This document shows, one piece after another, positions 1,113 to 20,981 of a stretch of DNA of 21,007 nt. The position numbers were made by a program, and so were the translations under genes. The notes beneath the pieces are model-generated. The model did not search any database, was not told where the DNA came from, and saw nothing but the letters and a program-made list of their open reading frames with translations. Numbering within the stretch: the stretch's first letter is position 1; each line of letters starts with the position of its first letter. The stretch comes from Ginkgo biloba (taxonomy: Eukaryota; Plantae; Ginkgophyta). The stretch covers positions 115,360,901 through 115,381,907 of the forward strand of contig JANKJI020000004.1 of NCBI GenBank assembly GCA_024626585.2, written 5' to 3'.

Positions 1113-1608
1113 ACAAGCTTGATACCCCCTTCAAGTTCCTCGCAAAGAGGACCCCACCATTTTGGGCCACATCCTTTTAAAGTGGATGTCAAGATGGAGA
1201 TCCCGATGTTCTCAAGGAAAATGGAGGTTGAATTGCTTTAGTCTTGGATTCAAGCGTTAGAGATTTATTTGTCATGTCAAGCATACACAGATGATAAAAA
1301 AATCACGTTTGCATGCTTGAAAATGGCAATGAAAGCGTTGCTTTGGAGGGAGATTGTGGCTTGGGATAGAACTTTCAAGAATCTAACTGCAATTATATCA
1401 TGGGATGAGTTCAAGAAGGCTCTCAAGAAGCATCTCTATCCTCAGTTATGAGAACAAGTTGCACATCAAGTGGCACTACCTTCGAAAGAGGCAAAACCAA
1501 ATGGTCTCAGATTATTATGAATAATTTTTGTACTTGATGATATGCAGGGGCATACAAGACTCAAATGAGAATACTATGTTGAGATTTGTGGGCAAGCTCA
1601 TAGCTTCC
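1113..1608 (+). pseudogene. Ty3/gypsy gag (retrotransposon gag domain), decayed
   Basis: PFKVDVKMEIPMFS...SWIQALEIYLSCQAYTDDKKITFACLKM..ALLW...ISWDEFKKALKKHLYP follows the gag pattern (IPxF..W..LE.Y...K..FA.L.....A..WW...W..FK). Contains stops and frameshifts. Confidence 0.8.
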
Positions 1609-2160
1609 NNNNNNNNNNNNNNNNNNNNNNNNNNNNNNNNNNNNNNNNNNNNNNNNNNNNNNNNNNNNNNNNNNNNNNNNNNNNNNNNNNNNNAAATTGT
1701 TTGCAAGATAGCTATGGCTGAATCCAAGGCCATTTCTACAGAAATACAGAAAAGCTTTAAGGAACCACCAAGGAATGGGTGCATAAATCTGTTTATTGAT
1801 GAAGAAACAGCAACAAGCTGAGAACCTCTTGGACAAGCTTGCCAACTCTCAACAGCAGTTGATTTCCTCAATAAAGCAGCTTCAAGGACCATCTGGACCA
1901 TCCTCATTTTCTTTTTCTCAGTCCTCCCCATTATGAAGTCCAGTTACTACCCCTAGACCACCTTTGGGTCAAGTACCAATTGCCCCATTATTCAACTCTC
2001 TCCCAAGACCATCTATGGGTCAAGTCGCAGGAGCACAAAGTGGTGTTGGGACAACAAGTTCGATACCCCCTTCAAGTTCCTCACAAGGAGATCCCCACCA
2101 GTTTGGGCCACATCCTTTTAAAGTGGATGCTACGGTAGAAATCCCAGTGCTCTCAAGGAA
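1113..2160 (+). repeat. 107-bp direct repeat: 1113-1219 vs 2054-2160 (two gag N-terminal segments)
   Basis: Ungapped alignment, about 91/107 identical by hand count. Shared core GATACCCCCTTCAAGTTCCTC...TTTGGGCCACATCCTTTTAAAGTGGATG...TCTCAAGGAA. Confidence 0.9.
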
Positions 2161-2299
2161 CAATGCATTGATATTTCTATTTCTATATGCTGATGAAATT
2201 ACATGTGACATAGTTCCCATGGATCGCACTGGAGTATTATTTAGCAGTCCTTTTCTATATGCTAGAAGGGCTGAAATTTTTCAGGCATTACATTCTTAG
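1964..2299 (+). pseudogene. Second gag N-terminus fused directly to the C-terminal half of a Ty3/gypsy aspartic protease
   Basis: The ORF reads ...PHPFKVDATVEIPVLS (gag start) then ADEITCDIVPMDRTGVLFSSPFLYAR (protease C-terminal DEVxCDVVPxDxCxVLLGxPxLYDR pattern). The catalytic D(S/T)G half is absent. Confidence 0.7.
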
Positions 2300-2489
2300 A
2301 TCAGTCCCAGTTTCTACTTCTTTTGTGCTTGTTACAAGCTCCCAGATGAGGAATCTTGTGGCTCTCAGAAGATGGTACTACTCATGATCCTGCCTAGAAA
2401 AGACCCCGTTTCTGATGAGGAAAAGGGGCTGAAATTAGTCATGAAGACAACAGGACAGTGACAAGAATTGGAAGGAATATTGTCCAAAT

Positions 2490-3058
2490 TTTAGCATGTA
2501 TTCGAAGAACCTAAGGGCCTACCTCATAAGAGGCTCATGGAACATCAAATTGACTTCTTACCAAGAGATCCCCTTCCTAATGGTGTGTTGTACCAAAAAT
2601 CAGTTTTAGAGTGAAGAGATTCGGAGGTAGTTTATACAACTTTTGGAAAAGGGTACATTCAACCTCCCTCCTCTTCATAGGGTCTCCTGTGATTCTTGTA
2701 CCAAAGAAGGATGACACATGGAGGATGTATATTGACCATTAGCAAAATTGCAGTGAAGAATTGTTATCCACTTCCTTGTATTGACAAATTATTAAACTTG
2801 CTTACCAAAGCTAAATATTTTAGTGAGATTGATTTAAAATATGTTTATCATCAAGTACAAATTAAGGAAGAGGATAACTAGAAGATGGGATTTTGAAACA
2901 AGCAAGGTTTATAAAATTTTAGTCATGCATTTTGGACTAGCCAACATGTCGATGATCTTTATGAAATTGATGACGCTTTGATCTATAATAGCACATGGGA
3001 GGAATATCTAGCATGTTCGTTGAGCTCTGTTGAAGCTTTAGGCAGCACAAGCTTCAAG
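2490..3058 (+). pseudogene. Ty3/gypsy reverse transcriptase, decayed
   Basis: VFEEPKGLPHKRLMEHQIDF, LLEKGYIQP, GSPVILVPK, WRMYID, KNCYPLPCIDKLL, KYFSEIDLKYVYHQVQIKEED, LIYNSTWEEYL. Stops, frameshifts and short deletions; ends at an N gap. Confidence 0.9.
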
Positions 3059-4588
3059 NNNNNNNNNNNNNNNNNNNNNNNNNNNNNNNNNNNNNNNNNN
3101 NNNNNNNNNNNNNNNNNNNNNNNNNNNNNNNNNNNNNNNNNNNNNNNNNNNNNNNNNNAATCTTATGTCAATTCAAACCATACATACCAGATACATATGG
3201 AAAAGAATATTATAGAAGAACGAATATATAACCCCAATCAGTTGGAGACCTAACTCCCCCCAAAGGATGAGGTGGACTAAACTACCCGTTCATAATGTCT
3301 AAAGTATTCAGAGCTAAGAGAATACGGGAATCAATGCAACTGGAACAAGAACCATGGAAAGAAATTATGAGACAAAACCATCTACCAACGGATTATGTAG
3401 AAGAACTACAAAAAGAGTGGACAACACAACATATAAGGGGATCCTTAGTTAACAAACCAATGGCCACCCAAAATTATGCTAGAAACTAGGTGCAAAAGGA
3501 AATAACATATCATTATGGCATTACTGATGAAAAGAAGTAGAGGACGCCACTTTTGATCAAGAAGATATAAAGGCATACTTGGCACAAGATGGAGAGAACG
3601 AGTATAAACAAAATAAGATAAGATAAATCCCATGGAAAGGTGTTATACAGTTTAAGGAAATGAGCAGTTGATGGGATCAACAAGTGATGGAAAAATAAAA
3701 AATACAAGTTGGAGAAATTGCATCAAATGGTATACCTAAATCAACAGCAATTGATAGAAGAAGAAGGATTGAGGTCAAAACACTGTAATAAGAAATTCAA
3801 TATAAGACCATTCAAAAGATACATATAAATATTGGAGGACATAACACAAAGTTGGGCTAGCATCTAGCAAACACAATTCAAACTCAAGACTAGCATGCTC
3901 CTATGGAGAATTAAAATAGGTGGAAATGCGCCTCCCAACAAACCTCCAAAACTGAGGTGTACAAGACCCCTTTCCATGCTTGGTTTGTTGAAACGAAATG
4001 AAAATGCATTAATGTCCACTAATAACTAAGAAACAGTCGATGGGACTATAATAATGTCCATAAATGTTACATATCAAGGGAGAGCTTCTAGCCTCTCCGA
4101 AGCAAAATCTAAAAAGGAGGGGGAAAAAACTCTCCTAAGAAGATTTCAGATAAAAAGTAGCAAATACAAGATAAAGTGCACATCCAATAGGAGTTAGAGG
4201 GCCCTTTTAAGCTCCTATCTCGAGCAAAAAAGGTCCTTTAAGGCATCAATCTAGGTCACTGAAAACCTAATACTCTTGCGATCTATGATGATAGACCCGT
4301 GAGTCGTATGCCATCAAAAAATTGCTTAGTCTGTATAATGATCTCGTTTATAATCTTATCATCAATGGCTATCAAACTAGGGTCTATCGTCTATTCATCA
4401 GCCCCTATCTCTCTCCTAGCATCTAAGGTCAAAGCTCCTCTATGCGGCCTAAGAAAATGAGTCTACCTCTTGACCCCAAACCTGGCNNNNNNNNNNNNNN
4501 NNNNNNNNNNNNNNNNNNNNNNNNNNNNNNNNNNNNNNNNNNNNNNNNNNNNNNNNNNNNNNNNNNNNNNNNNNNNNNNNNNNNNNTC

Positions 4589-6328
4589 AAGGATCAAGAA
4601 ATGAGGTGCTCAAGATACAACAACATGACTAAAATCTATTATAATTGAATGGCACAAGAATTGTTGATCAATCCCACCAAGGAATTAGCAACATTGTTAA
4701 AGGAGAACAAGAGTTCAAACCAAAAGACAAGACACAATATGGACTTTGAAAATTAAGGAATCAAATTGGCTGCTAAATAATTGATAGAAGAAGAACAAAG
4801 GTAGAATTTCTAAGCAATTCATGAACACAAAACTGAGCCCGCTCAAAGATACAAACAAACCGAACTATTATAGACATTAGAGATGGAATATGCCTTATCA
4901 AAATCGATACCTCATATTAAGTAAATGGAGAAGACAATGGTGAGTAATGATGACGAGTTCATTTTAAATTAGTAGTATATAAAAGAATCACTAATCATAA
5001 GGACCATGTGATGATGCAATAGGGGCAAACATTCAAACACAAAGATTGAGTAGGTTGATTTGGCTCAAAAGAAGGCACACTTGGAAAAGGCTTTCGTGTT
5101 TTGGGAGAAATGTTTCCTTCACACCAACAGTATATATAAGAGTAAAAGGGCTCTATGAATTACACACACTTAGAATTAGCAAGGAGCAAACATAACAACA
5201 AAGAAGACAAATATGTGGGAAAAAAAGATTATTGCAAGAAAGGTGCACAAACAAAGGCAAAGTGAAAATGAGGAATGAACCATGGCATTTAGAAGAAGAT
5301 TGGTCATAAAAAATGGAGTACACAAATAACCATCAAGAAAGAAGATTATCACATAAAGAGTGGCCATGTGTTTATGCATCAAGCGAGGAATCATAATTGG
5401 CTAGAAAAAGGAACAACATAGACCTTAATTGAAAAGTAGAGGAAAGAAAGATGCCACCACAAGAAATGGCACAAGGAGATAAGGGCAATCCAAACCAACT
5501 GAAGACCCAAGCAAGAGGACCGCATAAACATAATTTCAAAGGAGGCAAATATTGAGGTGCAAAGCCCAATAGCTTGTGTGGAAGAAGAAATCCAATGCAA
5601 AACAAAGTCCAAATGGCATCTAGGGCACCTCTAAACCAATAAGTGAAGAGACATTATACCATAGGAACATGTACAATCTTTCATCGGAGGCTATAAAGAA
5701 ATTGTTGGATCAGTTCAGCAAAGAAAATGTTGTCCTAAGAGATATAGATTTCCTCTTCAAGAAGGCTATGCCAGTAGAGTAGAATAAAGAATTGATGCTA
5801 GAAACGAGGTTGGAGATTAGCATAGCCAAGAAGAATATTGAATTGATTCTTAAGCACATGGAGGAAGTCAATCCTTCACCACTAAGAAAGGCAAATCCTT
5901 TTACAGCCCTATATATGAATGAAAACCACATGACATTGTTGAGCCACAAGGACATGTAAGGCTTCAAAGAAGAAACAAAAAGCATGCTTTAAGGAGCAAC
6001 AAACATATCCATAAGATAGTTGATTTGAATAAGATAGTCATACAAAAATAATTCAACAAGAGGAGACGGAAGTGGTAGAGGACATAAGTCCATAGGATAT
6101 GTAAAGACTTTTGCAAAATGCCTATAAACTAGCTCAGTTAAACAAATAATAGGAGTCTTAAACATTAGGAAAAGAGAGAGAAATTTCTCGTAGTAGTCAA
6201 TGGAATGGGAAACAACACAGGTTGTCATAAACAGGTTAATGTAAAGGGCTATTCTCCCCATTTGGATTGATGTATGTAATCTCGCTTATTTAGTAGAATA
6301 CGGGTTTTGTGTCCCATCTCTTAATTAA
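4589..6328 (+). other. Decayed coding-like (E/K/Q/L-rich, helical) reading frame(s), family not recognised; probably a transposon accessory ORF
   Basis: Strong purine/A skew on +. Long protein-like frames are interrupted mainly by TAA/TAG, e.g. QKKAHLEKAFVFWEKCFLHT (~5070-5125) and LRDIDFLFKKAMPVE*NKELMLETRLEISIAKKNIELILKHMEEVNPSPLRKANPF (~5735-5905). Confidence 0.35.
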
Positions 6329-6404
6329 TAATTAATAGAATATATTTTCATAAAGGAAAACTCTTGAACCATCTCACTAACATAAGATGAGAAATGTCAG
6401 TGGC

Positions 6405-6569
6405 CGGAAATGAATACACATGTGCTCATCACTTACGCACACTATTTGAATCCCCAGTCATGAACCCATGTGAACTGATCTCGGCTCCCGAGATCGCTTC
6501 ATATGGGTTAATGACCCGAGATCAATTCACATGGGTTCATGACTTTCCCACACTATTTAAATCCCCGGT
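6405..6569. repeat. Compound inverted/tandem repeat: four copies of a 28-29-bp unit (+,-,+,+) within a 111-bp-period direct repeat
   Basis: Arm A, 6456-6484, is AGTCATGAACCCATGTGAACTGATCTCGG. Its reverse complement matches 6516-6544 at 28/29 and 6488-6515 at 24/28. A diverged fourth copy at 6405-6433 is 22/29 to 6516-6544. CACACTATTTRAATCCCCRGT occurs at 6438-6458 and 6549-6569. Confidence 0.9.
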
Positions 6570-6586
6570 GCCGACAGCTAATCAGT

Positions 6587-6772
6587 AAACCAAACCCAAT
6601 TCGCCGATGTTCAAGATTATGGGACACTTAAGTCCCAGTTATTGACATCGAGACATTTCCCTTTTGTGTGCTTCATAATGGCTCTGTTTGATTTCATCTT
6701 GTGACCACCGATTGGCAAATCCCACTCGGTATTCGTTAAAACCGAACCCAATTCACTAGTGTCTAAAATCAT
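6587..6772 (+). repeat. 34-bp direct repeat (6587-6620 vs 6739-6772)
   Basis: AAACCAAACCCAATTCGCCGATGTTCAAGATTAT vs AAACCGAACCCAATTCACTAGTGTCTAAAATCAT: 25/34 identical, and all 9 differences are transitions. Confidence 0.75.
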
Positions 6773-7515
6773 TATATTATACTTTCACAGGAATAAATCA
6801 ACAAAAGAAGCGTCAAAATTTCACTCTGTGGCCAATAAAAACTTACTTTCTTCGCAATGAACTCACATTATGTCCCTTTACTGGATACAGGTGCACTAGA
6901 TATCATAACCTTCAATGACTCATATTTGGCCACTGCCTCCACCAAAGGAACTTGATCTTGAGAAGACCGTGTGATGCCCATATTCCTCGTGTAGAGCTTG
7001 GCCTTGTTAATGCCAATATCCCCAATTCTCAGCACTTGATTACATGAAAAACCTGGAGATGATAACAAGGTTCCTACATTAACATGGCGTGGGAAGGAGG
7101 CTTGTACTAGAGCCCTCAACTTTGATGTCCTCCCTATGGGATGATGACAGCATCCCTACACCCTAGAAGCTTTCTTCCTTCATCATTGAATTGAACTGTC
7201 ATGGTCTTACGCACTATGTCACTTTTATTTTTCCATGTCGCTGCCTCCCTTCCTCCTCGTTGCACCCGTCATCCCCTCACATGCACCCTCATCGAAGAGT
7301 TTTCCTTACATATCCTTGAACCATATCCATAATTGTGCCTCCCATAGTTCCCCTTGTTGTTGCCTCTTGTTTCCCCTAGGTCACTCTCCATCCTCGCCAA
7401 CACCATTGCCTTATAGTCTCACGCCTCCCTACACAAAAAAATAAATAAATCAACAAAAAGCTAAAAACAAAAATATAATAAAGTCATTACCTATAGTTTC
7501 TTTTAATTTTTTTTG

Positions 7516-7587
7516 TAGCCCTTAGTTAGGTATCTCATAGTCTTATGGGGCATCCATAAGACTTTCTTTTTAAAACTCTAAGGGCTA
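7516..7587. repeat. Nested inverted repeat (two perfect 10-bp stems)
   Basis: TAGCCCTTAG (7516-7525) / CTAAGGGCTA (7578-7587) enclose AGTCTTATGG (7539-7548), loop GGCAT, CCATAAGACT (7554-7563). Confidence 0.8.
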
Positions 7588-7744
7588 ATGGGTTAATGAA
7601 ATATTCTTATATTTAATCAAATAAGGGAACNNNNNNNNNNNNNNNNNNNNNNNNNNNNNNNNNNNNNNNNNNNNNNNNNNNNNNNNNNNNNNNNNNNNNN
7701 NNNNNNNNNNNNNNNNNNNNNNNNNNNNNNTGTGTGGGGGGGAG

Positions 7745-7891
7745 TGTCAACTATGCAACACAATGATAAAAGAAGAGAGAGAAGACAAGACTACACCCAA
7801 GCCTTTTGACTTCAAACAAGAATCTCATTCATTAATAATTAGCATTAAAGGGATTTATAGTTACAAGGTAGGAAATATAAATATATTGACA
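7745..7891 (-). mobile_element. Putative short (147 bp) LTR, TRIM-like
   Basis: Inverted termini TGTCAA...TTGACA. On the minus strand it follows a purine run (AAGAAAGGATACA) at the end of a long purine-rich tract, and contains TATAAAT and a pyrimidine-rich 3' part. No partner LTR in the window. Confidence 0.4.
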
Positions 7892-8919
7892 TGTATCCTT
7901 TCTTAGAAGGAGTCTATAACTTTGCCTTAAAAGACCTTCCTCTCGATACTTTGACTAATGTCTCTCCTAACTCTACTTCTTTGTCATTTGAACACTTGTC
8001 TTCCTCAATCCTCTACTTCTCCTTAGTCTTCTTCTGCCTATTATCTCTCTCTTCTCTCCTTCTCTACTCTCTTTCATATAGCATCAATCTCTCTCACTTC
8101 CTTTCCCCTCGTGTTCACCTATCTTCCCTACACCTTTTCTTCTCATCTCTCTCTTCTCTCCCTTCTAAGATGCTTTTCCCCTTCCAAAATGTTCTCCCCT
8201 TGCACCAAAATTCTTTCTCTTCTACATTTGATATGGGCAATTAAGATTGTCATTAATTCCCCTCCACTTGGAGTCTCCTACCATCCTCAAGCCCCAAAAT
8301 CTCCTACTCTGGGAATATTTACTTCAAGGGTGCAACCACCTACTACTTTTAATGCTCAAATTCAAGCTTCCCACTCATTGACGTAATCTCTATCCTATGC
8401 CAAACTCTACTTTCTTTGTCAGTCTATCTTTCATTAATGTGGCCTTCCTTCTTCTGCTTAGATCCATCCCTCTTATCAGTAATCCTTCGTCACCATCAAT
8501 CTTCTAAAGGTCTGTGTAATGTTGTTGGTCATCTGTCATCATTGTCAATCTCCATTTTATGAACCTCGCCATCGTCCACTAAAATTTCTTCCTTCATTTG
8601 CTGGTTGTTATCATCACCCCTTGTCGTCAACCCTCTATTATTGTACTTTGATCGTCGGTGTCGACTTCTCAAAATTATGACAAAATTAAAATTCGATGAT
8701 GCTCCTCCCTTAGTATGAGCCCCTACTCATGTTACTCCTTAATACTCCTCTAATTCTTTTCATCTATATTTTTTTAGCTCCTCCTCAATAATCTACATGT
8801 TATCCTCTTGTGGTAACCCNNNNNNNNNNNNNNNNNNNNNNNNNNNNNNNNNNNNNNNNNNNNNNNNNNNNNNNNNNNNNNNNNNNNNNNNNNNNNNNNN
8901 NNNNNNNNNNNNNNNNNNN

Positions 8920-8966
8920 ATATATATATATATATATACACATATGTATACACACACACACACACA
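8920..8966. repeat. Compound (AT)n/(CA)n microsatellite
   Basis: ATATATATATATATATATACACATATGTATACACACACACACACACA directly after an N gap. Confidence 0.9.
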
Positions 8967-8978
8967 TAAATATCTAAG

Positions 8979-13519: not shown

Positions 13520-14412
13520 TATGTAAAATGTTTTAAATATTTCCCATATACTAGAGTAGGCTAGTTCCATCTTCTTATTTTATCTTGAAAGTGTTATTTC
13601 CAATTGACTCTATAATTTCATAAGGTCCAAGATTAAAGGGAATCAAGCTTATGACAAGCATTAGGCTTCTCTTTTGATTTATTCCACATTAAGACTCGAT
13701 CACCCATTTCAAATTCCTTCTTCGAAGCTTTCTTATAAAAAAATTACTTAATCTTTTCCTAGTTGTTTTAAGTAAACAAAATTGTTGTATGCCTTTTCTC
13801 CTCTATTTGTAGAAGGTCAAACAAGTGCCTTTCAATAGGATAATTAGTGAAATCTTTGCCATTTTCTTGAATAATCAACCTGAACACCAAAATTTAGAGG
13901 TTGACTGGTAAGATAAATTCTTTCCCATACAATATGGCATATAGGGAACATACAAGCTCATATTTTGGTGTAATTCTATCTACCCACAAAGCTAAACACA
14001 ACTTAATGTGCCTGTCCAATCAATTCTCTTTCACTATCCTCCAGAGAATTTTGATGAGATTCTTGTTGATTGATTTTACTAAACTATTACCTTGAGTATA
14101 ATAATTAGAGGATGGATCAACAATATCCCATAAGTTATATAAACTCAATCATATTGGCTGATATAAACATAGTTCCCTTATATAACACAATCTAGCTTAG
14201 AAATGTAAACCTCAATAGAATATTTTATTCTAAGAAGTGGACCACCTCATTTGAATAAGCCTTTTTTAAAGGAACGACCTCATCCCATTTAGTTAAATAA
14301 TCTATGGTTTCTAAGATGTACATTAGTCCCTTGCTTGAAGGTGGATTGATCAGACCTGTGAAATCCATATGCCATTGAGTAAATGGATCATCAACTGTGA
14401 TGGGTTGTAAAG
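13520..14412 (-). pseudogene. Ty3/gypsy integrase core plus GPY/F region, non-chromovirus Tat/Ogre-like, decayed
   Basis: LQPITVDDPFTQWHMDFTGLINPPSSKGLMYILETIDYLTKWDEVVPL (cf. PFxxWGLDFIG.INPPSS.GH.YIL.ATDYFTKWVEA.PL), SNYYTQGNSLVKSINKNLIKIL, FEMGDRVLMWN, GPYEIIE. Confidence 0.9.
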
Positions 14413-16764: not shown

Positions 16765-17370
16765 CAAGTAGATTTTCCAAACTTGAGGAAACTCAATGAA
16801 TGCTGAAAAACTCATCAAACTTAAGGCAGTCGATAGTAGCGTTGATGAATATTTATAGAATATCGAGTAGATTCATCAAACTTGAGGCAACTCGAAGTGA
16901 AATTGTGAGCCAACATAATCATTGAACTTGAGGCAATCGATAAAGGTGATGATGAATTTACCCTCAATACCTAGTAGATTCACTAAACTTAAGGCAACCC
17001 AATAAATGCCTATAGAATTACAAAAATTGAGGCAGTTGACAGTGGTGTTGAGGTTTCCACCTAGAATACTGAGTAGATTCCCCAAACTTAAGGCAACTCA
17101 AAGTGAAAATCATAGGCTAATAGAATCATCAAACTTGAGGCAATCAGTAGGGGTATTGAGGATTCTACTAATATAATCGAGTAGAATCATCGATTGAGGA
17201 AACTTAGAGACAATCTCATAGAATCATCAATTGAGGCAATTAGTAGAATACTAATAGAACCATCGAGTGAGATTATTCTCAGTGACAACTAGAGAAAAGG
17301 CATTGAGGATTCTACTGACAAAAGAGCAAGTTGAGTAGAGTCAAGTAGAACCACCAATGGAGGTAACTTA
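16765..17370 (+). repeat. Degenerate tandem array inside the LTR with a 206-bp higher-order period
   Basis: Core (TAGA)WTCATCAAACTTRAGGCAA with cores at 16779, 16817, 16878, 16924, 16985, 17023, 17084, 17131, ~17190 and ~17227. Spacings are 38, 61, 46, 61, 38, 61, 47, ~59, ~37. Confidence 0.85.
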
Positions 17371-17877: not shown

Positions 17878-17934
17878 ATAGTGGTGTATTGAGGAGATAA
17901 CTAGATTGCATTAGTTGGTGAATAAGAAATTAGG

Positions 17935-18920
17935 ATGGCACCTAGAGTAGATAGAACTCTCATTCAGGTGATAAATAATTTAGTGCAAAAGGTCAATGAC
18001 CTTGGAAGTGAATTGAAAAGACAAGGATTGACAGAGAGTGATGTTGAATCAAAACTTGAATATGAAGGACTAGAGCCACCTAGACCAAATGATGAGGACA
18101 TGTTACCCAGATTGTTAAAGAGCAACAGAGGTGGAGAAAAAGTGGAGGTACCAATCTTTGGTGTATGTATGAAGCCAGAAGACCTATTGGATTAGGTCAG
18201 CTCCTTGGAGAAGTATTTTAACTGGGAAGAAATAAAAGATCTTAAGAAGGTGAAGTTTGTGTGCACTAGACTAAAGGAACACACAACCATATGGTGGGAG
18301 AATTTATAAAAGAGAGAGTCTAGAAAATAAAAAAGAAAATTAGGACATGGAAAAAGATGGTGGAGAATCTGAAGGAAATTTTTTTACCCAGAGACTATTT
18401 AAGGAGTTTTAGAATTTGAGGCAGAGAGAGAAGAGTGTACCTGAGTACATCAACGAGTTCTTCAGATTATCAATCTATAAGGACCTTGAAGAATATAAAG
18501 AAAAACCAGTGGTTAAGTATGTCAATGGTTTGAATTATATTCTTCAAGATGAAATTATAATGCACCATATGAAGAATGTCGATGATGCCTATTAGCTAGC
18601 ATTAAAATCTAAGGATAAGTTGGTTAGAAACTTAAAGAAAATACCTTTTGTTAGAGGTGCAGTGACATATTATCAATGACATAAAAGAAGTGTCTAATAT
18701 TGGAATGATGAAGGTCATTTGAGGTATGAGAACACCCATAATTTTATTTCTGACATGTCTTTTCGACCAAGAGAAGAATTTGATGCCTATCATGCTAGTG
18801 TTTGGGGATGATTTTCCCATACCCATGGAAAAGGGTCAGATAGAGCACCACATGCACCTTGAAGATATATGACATGCTTTGGATGTGGGGAAGAAGGTCA
18901 TTGAGTATTTGAGTTCCCAA
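17935..18920 (+). pseudogene. gag with C-terminal zinc knuckle, decayed
   Basis: MAPR...KVEVPIFGVCMKPEDLLD*VSSLEKYFNWEEIKDLKKVKFVCTRLKEHTTIWWE..., and knuckle TCFGCGEEGH*VFEFP at ~18872-18919. Confidence 0.9.
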
Positions 18921-19036
18921 GGTAGAATGATGACAAATCATGACCAAAGGAATTTGGTGCTAATTTGGTTTGACAAGAAGTAGGGCCTAAGCTCACTTGG
19001 ATAGACTAAGTCTACAAAAAATAAAGAGGTGAACCA

Positions 19037-19470
19037 ATGAGTGCATCTCAAAGCAGTTTTGAATTATTGAAGAAGAGGATGACTAAAGCTCTAGTATTAT
19101 CACTTCTAGACTTCAACAAGGTTTGTGTGGTTGAATGTGATACATCAAGAGTCAATATTAGAGTAATACTTAGCCAAGAGAGTAGACCCATTGCATATTT
19201 CAACAAGAAGATAAATGAATCTAGGATGAAGTATTCTACATATGACATGGAATTTTATGCTATGGTGTAGACGATAAAATATTGGTGACATTATTTATTT
19301 CCCAAGGAATTTATACTATTCATGGACCATCAGGATTTAAAGTTTATAAATTCCCAAGGAAAATTGAGCATCTGACATGCAAAGTGGGTTAAATTCTTGC
19401 AAAGCTATTCTTTTGTGTTGAAACATAAGTCGGGGAAGACAAACCAAGTCGCAGATGCCTTAAGCTGGAG
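19037..19470 (+). pseudogene. RT connection / RNase H domain, decayed
   Basis: FELLKKRMTKALVLSLLDF, VECDTS, LSQESRPIAYFNKKIN, YSTYDMEFYAMV, HYLFPKEFILFMDHQDLKFI, HAKWVKFLQ, HKSGKTNQVADALS. Confidence 0.92.
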
Positions 19471-19633
19471 GACAATATTGTTGACCATCATGACGAATGA
19501 GGTTTTTGGTTTTGCTTCGGTGAAGGAGATGTATGCCACCGACGAAGAATTTCAACAAGTCTTCGGATACTTGCAGAACTTGACATCTGACAATGGAGAT
19601 CTTTTGGGGGAATATTTCCTGCAGGAAGGTTAG

Positions 19634-20710
19634 TTGTTCAAGGGTCGACATCTATGCATACCCGACAACCCGATTAGAGAAAATACCATTCAAGAATTTC
19701 ACAGTGGTAGGCTAGGGGGTCACTTTGGTCAGGATAAGACCATTACACTAGTGGTGGAGCAATATTTTTTGCTAGGATTGAAGAGACAAGTGAGCAAGTT
19801 CATGGATCAGTGTAAAATTTGCCAAGTTGCTAAGGGATAGTCACAAAATGTGGGACTGTACAAGCCATTGCTAGTGCTAGATGCACCTTGGACCGACATC
19901 TCAATGCATTTTGTATTAGGGATGTGAATTACTCAAAGGAAAAATGACTCAGTATTTGTGGTTGTTGATAAGTTCTCGAAGATGGCTCATTGTATACCCT
20001 ATTAAAAGACCAATGATGTACGTAGGATAGCGGAGTTAGTCTTCAAAGAAGTAGTCGGACTACATGGGTTGCCAAGGAACATCATGTCCAACCAAAATAA
20101 CAAGTTTCTAAGTCACTTTTGGACAACGTTGTGGAAGAAATTGGACACTAAGATTTAGTTCAGTAGTGTGTATCATCCACAGACCAAAGGACAAACTGAA
20201 GTGGTGAATAGGTCATTAGGCAATCTGTTGAGGAGTTTGGCAAGCGACAAACCCAAACAATGGGACCAAGTCTTGGTACAAGCAAAGTTTGTGTGCAACA
20301 GTTCAATGAGCAGATCAAGAGGATTTGTGCCCTTTCAAGTGGTGTATAGAAAGGACACTAAGGATTGTTATGGACTTGGTCAATATTCCAAGTCATGAGT
20401 GCATCAGTGATGATGTGGATACTATGGAAGAATAGTTGAAGCAAGTTCATAAGGAGGTGAGATGATATTTGTCAGAGAGCAACACAAGGTATAAAACTGC
20501 AATAGACTGACATCGCCGACATAAAGAATTCGAAGTCGGAGACATGGTTATGGTATTCCTAAGAAAGGATAGATTTCCGACAGGAACCTACACCAAGTTG
20601 AAGTACAAAAAGATAGGTAGATTTCATGTCGGATAGTCAAGAAAATCAACGAGATTGCATATGTGGTGGATCTATCGACATCTCACCCATTTTCAACATT
20701 GCAGACTTGT
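19634..20710 (+). pseudogene. Integrase (HHCC zinc finger, core, GPY/F-like region), decayed
   Basis: EFHSGRLGGHFGQDKT...CKICQ, PWTDISMHFVLG, SVFVVVDKFSKMAH, LHGLPRNIMS, YHPQTKGQTEVVNRSLGNLLRSL, FEVGDMVMVFL, KLKYKKIGRF. Confidence 0.92.
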
Positions 20711-20784
20711 AAGAATTCCAAGGGGGTGAACAACCAGAAGAAGCAGTGGTGGATTGGCAGCGATAAGTGCCAAGGAAGAAGAAA

Positions 20785-20920
20785 GAGCAAACTGAACAAG
20801 TGATGGACAAAAAAGTTGAGGAGACCAGAGGAGGCAGTTATTATAGATATCTGGTGAAGTGGGAAGGCTTACCGCAAAAAAATTGTACTTGGATCATAGA
20901 AGAAGAGGTCAGGGGTTTAG
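20785..20920 (+). pseudogene. Integrase C-terminal chromodomain (type II-like)
   Basis: EQTEQVMDKKVEETRGGSYYRYLVKWEGLPQKNCTWIIEEEV. YLVKW and TW are conserved; the first and third aromatic-cage positions appear non-aromatic. Confidence 0.8.
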
Positions 20921-20981
20921 ATGAAGAGAAGTGGAAGAATTTTGAAGATAAGTGTTTACAGGAGGACCTATAATTTTCTAT

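Follow-up and report, generated by a model that had tools for sequence, protein, structure and literature searches.

A 28-nt unit in direct and inverted copies within a Ginkgo biloba intron: probable scar of a local DNA-copying error

Within less than 200 nt, the Ginkgo biloba genome contains a block in which copies of a 28-nt unit follow each other in a +,−,+,+ arrangement. The single inverted copy, arm A, can pair with either of two direct copies, B1 next to it or B2 further away, while a fourth copy, B0, lies upstream. This raises the question of how such an arrangement came about and whether the competing hairpins serve a purpose. A sequence-only reading had offered three options: a bistable switch or small-RNA precursor, a set of oriented sites for protein binding or recombination, as in an element end or origin, and the footprint of quasi-palindrome template switching. 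We analyzed the block within a stretch of 21,007 nt of contig JANKJI020000004.1 (in the following called the window). The block appears to be what a local error in DNA copying left behind, and resembles neither a known RNA gene nor a transposon.

Arrangement and authenticity of the repeat units

All elements described in the sequence-only reading were recovered at their positions by a repeat search, BLAST and unit-by-unit counts (Table 1). The repeat search returned the inverted arms as a pair of 32-nt sequences separated by a spacer of 25 nt, and a BLAST comparison with the whole window confirmed the pairing of A with B2 at an e-value of 1e-8. B1 and B2 correspond to a tandem pair of 28 nt (6487-6514 and 6515-6542, 86% identity), which was found by the repeat search as well as by Tandem Repeats Finder. 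Counted unit by unit, the reverse complement of A matches B2 at 27 of 28 positions and B1 at 24 of 28, the same number as between B1 and B2. The older copy B0 is more distant, with 21/28 matches to B2 and 17/28 to B1. The unit itself contains small palindromic sub-motifs.

B0 and B2 are each embedded in a longer direct repeat. It had been described as 54 bp long with an offset of 111 bp; the offset holds from start to start, and the repeat extends over 63 nt. In both copies, called R1 and R2, the 28-nt unit is preceded by a 9-nt prefix and followed by a 26-nt tail, and their local alignment reaches a z-score of 23 against shuffled sequences. The segment outside this alignment runs from the core of A across 3 nt into B1, of which it takes in the first 19 nt; as a whole it forms a near-palindrome. 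Arm A shares its first 3 nt with the end of R1, and its last 3 nt (6485-6487) become the loop when A pairs with B1. At its end, B1 runs into R2: its last 9 nt serve as the R2 prefix, which matches the R1 prefix at 6 of 9 positions and the end of the unit at 8 of 9. As these 9 nt are part of the older 63-nt repeat, B1 is not an independent full copy of the unit.

Table 1 Features of the repeat block and the adjacent exon (positions within the window).
Feature	Position	Strand	Characteristics
R1, older copy of the 63-nt repeat	6396-6458	+	9-nt prefix, unit B0 (6405-6432), 26-nt tail; 78% identity to 6507-6569
Arm A, inverted unit copy	6456-6487	−	94% complementary to 6513-6544; minus-strand match to the repeat profile, E 2e-5
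Presumed 48-nt near-palindromic insert	6459-6506		Between R1 and R2; spacing 111 = 63 + 48
B1, proximal direct copy	6488-6515	+	24/28 to B2 and to the reverse complement of A; four derived changes
R2, second copy of the 63-nt repeat	6507-6569	+	Prefix, B2, tail; repeat search, alignment and profile
B2, distal direct copy, best partner of A	6516-6544	+	28/29 complementary to 6456-6484
R3, tentative older copy of ~60 nt	6581-6640	+	R2-R3 alignment z 3.4 (3/500 shuffles)
R4, tentative older copy of ~60 nt	6732-6795	+	34 nt at 74% with 6587-6620
5′ splice site, GTAAGT	6841-6846	−	Opens the intron with the block; sequence and depth step at 6847
Adenylate-kinase P-loop exon	6847-7137	−	Stop codon 6868-6870, degenerate P-loop; 89% to Gb_23853 residues 32-120

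Downstream of R2, two further segments in the same orientation, R3 and R4, may tentatively be regarded as still older copies of the repeat on the basis of their alignment with each other (z 7.2, none of 500 shuffles as good) and with R2. In a leave-out profile search they reached window-wide e-values of 1 to 5, which are non-significant. Their position and orientation suggest a history of local duplication.

The block is not an artefact of the assembly. The stretch is present in public sequencing runs of nine studies, and contigs of two runs from different studies, one of 278 nt in run X2 (6311-6588) and one of 531 nt in run X15 (6060-6589), reproduce the block without a single difference, ruling out an artefact for practical purposes. 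Among the contigs of four runs on 5600-7400, a comparison that is blind to rare isoforms, we found no joints, strand changes, inversions or indels within the block.

Some variation was observed just downstream. The X15 assembly shows a two-branch bubble centred on 6590, with polymorphic positions 6589-6593, the X2 contigs break at 6588/6562, and position 6710 is polymorphic (G>A in X15 and in a further run, X19).

Copy number and origin of the block

At 80% likeness, the segment 6311-6588 matched only the contig of its own locus in the DNA run X2, of which ~61% of the contigs were read, and the longer segment 6311-6846 likewise matched only contigs of its own locus. With this coverage, a family of at least five similar copies would very probably be detectable, and copies diverged by more than 20% would escape. 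The block is thus single-copy at ≥80% likeness. The window contains no further copy of the unit with at least 18 of 28 matches, and BLAST found no other copies of the region in it. No known family accounts for the block either. At gathering score, no Rfam family matches it, and the two miRNA families returned at a permissive threshold score 27.8 bits against a required 90 and 24.6 against 95, a generic hairpin shape only. Among the ten local reading frames, none gave a Pfam match near the block, and neither the frame across the block nor that of the exon (Table 1) was found in a protein collection by exact look-up. A degenerate version of the 28-nt pattern was not found in collections of metagenomes and prokaryote genomes, where plant DNA would not be expected, and a scan for bacterial-type promoters and terminators stayed at chance level and was uninformative.

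The ancestral state was reconstructed from the internal paralogues R1 and B0 only. Because B0 carries the letters of B2 at all four sites that distinguish B1 from B2, B2 appears to keep the ancestral state, and judged by these comparisons, A and part of B1 look like new material. Counted against this state, B1 has four derived changes, one of them inside the old prefix, A has one and B2 has none. As the distance between R1 and R2 equals one 63-nt repeat plus 48 near-palindromic nucleotides at a single-copy locus, the footprint of a template switch fits the anatomy best. Template switching is an established route to perfect reverse-complement stems in one event (PMC8794818, PMC7954356), and a reverse-complement copy of the adjacent segment lies at short range here (94% over 32 nt, 25 nt apart). 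Quasi-palindrome template switching, the third of the options named at the outset, therefore agrees best with the anatomy; its suggested direction, in which A was copied to make B2, finds no support, since B2 holds the ancestral state by the same comparison. With a probability of roughly 0.6, we consider the block a single-copy template-switch and fold-back scar or duplication scar in a decayed array of ~60-nt direct repeats inside a Ginkgo intron.

We infer the order of events and the switch mechanism, together with the absence of a function, as follows. The old copies R1 and R2 would initially have lain head to tail. A template switch during replication or repair would then have put 48 nt, the presumed insert 6459-6506, between them: the new strand would have copied the R2 unit backwards, giving arm A, and by folding back on A it would next have copied 19 nt in the forward direction, giving the new part of B1, until synthesis realigned on the 9-nt prefix of R2 via its likeness to the end of the unit. 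The outcome would be the −,+,+ arrangement beside the older + copy B0 and, as a by-product, transcripts across the block that are able to form a hairpin of 29-32 bp.

Two points sit less easily with this scenario. The new material has acquired four later changes, and three of them lie within the 19 new nucleotides of B1 (p ~0.05, our own estimate). Such an excess is unexpected for an equal age of A, B2 and the new part of B1, so that two events or error-prone synthesis may be needed. In addition, a perfect 29-bp stem on the minus strand of an apparently transcribed region also fits a young functional hairpin, which counts against reading the block as a scar.

One unlikely alternative takes the block for the remnant of an old DNA transposon (a MITE, a fold-back element or subterminal repeats) with the units in two orientations as its former transposase-binding sites. 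It draws on the presence of several unit copies in both orientations within ~500 nt, including weak 17/28 copies at 6249 (minus strand), 6590 and 6742, which exceed a local chance expectation of ~0.1, and on the richness of the window in Ty3 fragments (capsid, RT, RNase H, integrase and chromodomain). Against it, no other copy at ≥80% likeness was found in the DNA run, in which the flanking segments 5661-5904 and 6140-6281 did draw diverged paralogous contigs, several of them below 90%. There is no clean target-site duplication, as no flush direct repeat flanks either 6456-6544 or 6396-6575. Together with the lack of a dispersed multi-copy family in X2 at 80% likeness and in the window, this argues that the block is not a MITE. 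Furthermore, the outer ends of the block are complementary over only nine interrupted pairs, and A and B2 are nearly identical (27/28), with the other copies at 75-86%, which speaks for a recent local event instead of an inherited element structure.

Compared with described systems, the block is closest to short-range template-switch or quasi-palindrome mutations (four-point model; PMC8794818, PMC7954356), with which it shares a nearby reverse-complement copy within tens of bases, a near-perfect stem, a single-copy locus and a change that resembles a complex insertion and not point mutations. In contrast to these, the event is here read from the internal paralogues (R1 and B0) only, the block needs two switches (one backwards and one, by fold-back, forwards) or two events, and the divergence of the proximal arm B1 exceeds the expectation for a single event. 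With plant MITEs and fold-back elements the block has in common a length below 200 nt, inverted arms and a location in an intron of a transposon-rich genome, but it differs in having no detected multi-copy family or target-site duplication and in that its arms lie within a local direct-repeat array. R1, R2 and, tentatively, R3 and R4, following each other in one orientation over ~400 nt, resemble a decayed minisatellite with units of ~60 nt; unlike in such an array, the identities do not exceed 78%, the spacing is irregular (111, 74 and 152) and one partial unit is inverted.

Position in an adenylate-kinase intron

The block lies 272-451 nt into the intron that follows the P-loop exon of an adenylate-kinase gene on the minus strand (Table 1). 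For the minus-strand frame at 6871-7155, the sole relative among 1.8 billion representative sequences was a 188-amino-acid protein of Ginkgo biloba in EukProt, Gb_23853, which matches the Pfam adenylate-kinase domain (ADK, E 6.5e-15). Its residues 1-32 are identical to the translation of 7406-7311, and residues 32-128 align to 7137-6847. The exon following 6847 is absent from the window, the intron running instead into Ty3-type retroelement debris. The exon frame had no matches in the PDB sequence search or a protein atlas.

In runs X15 and X19, the contig depth shows a 20- to 40-fold step exactly at 6847 (13 to 281 in X15, 10.5 to 236 in X19). From their labels both runs could only be guessed to be RNA, and by this step they behave like RNA. 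At 7108 the contigs of both runs depart from the window and continue identically with foreign sequence, and the upstream end of the abundant mRNA contig was not found in the window at up to three mismatches. In X15 the depth on the block is ~6, or ~2% of that on the exon, which matches the expectation for unspliced precursor. Run X22, a set of raw RNA reads, placed none on the stretch, a result that carries no weight as a test. Passive transcription as an intron of this adenylate-kinase gene copy, from the minus strand, is the best explanation for the presence of the block in these data.

The exon itself is a mosaic. Contigs of X2, X15 and X19 differ from the window at 26-28 positions between 6870 and 7076, and the variant letters in these runs remove the stop codon and restore a canonical P-loop. 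By comparison, only 0-2 differences occur over 6311-6869, and in one X2 contig the window-identical segment 6562-6869 is continuous with the variant letters. There are 16 transitions, 13 of them at CG or CHG sites of the variant. Possible explanations of the mosaic are a patch of gene conversion, the merging of a second locus by contig simplification, and an artefact of polishing. Run X19, which is labelled organism B, contains 6564-6876 with four differences and the same exon variant. It has no contig on 5905-6563, a segment that includes the hairpin block; low coverage, divergence and absence are all possible reasons.

Predicted folding and the possibility of a hairpin RNA

The predicted fold energy of the 180-nt block is −65 kcal/mol for the plus strand (z-score −5.9) and −76 kcal/mol for the minus strand (z-score −6.5), and none of 200 shuffles was as good. 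The individual hairpins of A with its two possible partners differ in energy: A:B2 reaches −50.8 kcal/mol on the plus and −54.4 kcal/mol on the minus strand (89 nt), and A:B1 about −37 to −37.8 and −33.4 to −33.6 kcal/mol, respectively, so that A:B2 is more stable by 13-21 kcal/mol. Its stem comprises 29 pairs on the minus strand, G-U pairs included, and is free of mismatches there; the plus-strand stem contains one, so that the strand preference depends on a single position. The distant arm is thus the better partner by fold energy. This preference, described as unusual in the sequence-only reading, goes back to only four to five substitutions and is only marginally non-random (p ~0.05-0.14, our own binomial estimate assuming equal rates).

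Two mutually exclusive hairpins, as envisaged in the switch or small-RNA option, do exist in the predictions; bistability does not follow from them given the gap of 13-21 kcal/mol, and no RNA family was matched. The predicted share of molecules in which B2 is unpaired and only A:B1 is formed amounts to ~2e-10 on the plus and 2e-16 on the minus strand, and DNA parameters gave the same order. An equilibrium bistable switch was rejected, the two folds having unlike free energies (−50.8/−54.4 against about −37/−33 kcal/mol). For the direct path from A:B1 to A:B2, we estimated a barrier of 28-32 kcal/mol, which is a heuristic upper bound. If A:B1 formed first during transcription, it could therefore persist in the model, a kinetic possibility and not a demonstrated switch.

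Unlikely, in our assessment, is a function of the block as a young hairpin-RNA or proto-MIRNA locus, in which the 29-bp A:B2 duplex of the minus strand would be diced and B1 would act as a kinetic decoy that forms first and limits processing. The mismatch-free minus-strand stem of 29 pairs, counting G-U, at −54.4 kcal/mol would provide the duplex, the block lies within the 531-nt contig of the RNA-like run X15, and a barrier of 28-32 kcal/mol makes a kinetic trap plausible. De novo miRNA hairpins arising from template switching have been described (PMC10710096). These resemble the block in having a perfect stem of about the length of a miRNA duplex, apparently made in one step in an apparently transcribed region; they differ in that they come from primates, and the present case is a gymnosperm intron known from its sequence and predicted fold. 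Against such a function stand the Rfam scores (27.8 and 24.6 bits), far below their thresholds of 90 and 95, and the structure of the hairpin. Plant miRNA precursors normally have a lower stem beyond the duplex, and here there is none outside the 29-32 bp. The strand preference comes from one mismatch position only, run X19 (organism B) has no contig on the block, and no literature match was found for the arm sequence or for the gene identifier Gb_23853.

A more specific version appears very unlikely, namely that the block is a newborn intronic hairpin-RNA gene, created by a template switch in an expressed adenylate-kinase gene, within its first long intron. Its 29-bp stem would be diced, and the older, proximal B1 would serve as a co-transcriptional decoy that sets the share of transcripts reaching the processable fold.

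Read as a template-switch scar, the block would be a clean gymnosperm example of an old repeat array turned by local copying errors into a long perfect stem with a competing partner. Hairpin-RNA genes are believed to originate from raw material of this kind. If small RNAs came from the arms, the locus would be a hairpin gene at birth, with the copies that preceded it still readable beside it; otherwise, it would be a mutational scar of an ordinary kind, situated in a very long intron.

We dismiss as highly improbable an array of oriented protein-binding or recombination sites, for example an origin or an invertible segment, which is suggested by nothing but the arrangement itself and the small palindromic sub-motifs of the unit, whereas the block is single-copy and intronic, has no recombinase gene beside it, shows no joints, strand changes or indels in any run compared and contains old copies that decay freely (75-78%). 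The corresponding option of an element end, origin or recombination site likewise finds no backing in other copies, a target-site duplication or inversion isoforms among the contigs.

Elsewhere in the window, a long A-rich stretch spans 3000-6300 on the plus strand with an AT skew of 0.2-0.34. Because 5661-5904 and 6140-6281 draw diverged paralogous contigs, this stretch probably consists of old repeat DNA, ending ~100 nt short of the block. On the other side, 7190-8400 is strongly C/T-rich and of low complexity, with a GC skew down to −0.5, and is followed by an AT/AC microsatellite at 8920-8973. Ty3/gypsy fragments were found on the plus strand at 1242-3250 and 17926-20970 (capsid, a weak RT, RNase H, an integrase zinc finger and a chromodomain), and a weak Ty3/gypsy integrase core lies at 14228-14410 on the minus strand. 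The window also contains 15 runs of 10-100 N each (e.g., 4487-4586 and 7631-7730). Within 16769-17323, where the reading frame 16879-17097 had no Pfam match, diverged direct repeats of 38 nt and ~100 nt occur together with a 36-nt tandem repeat at 17182-17271.
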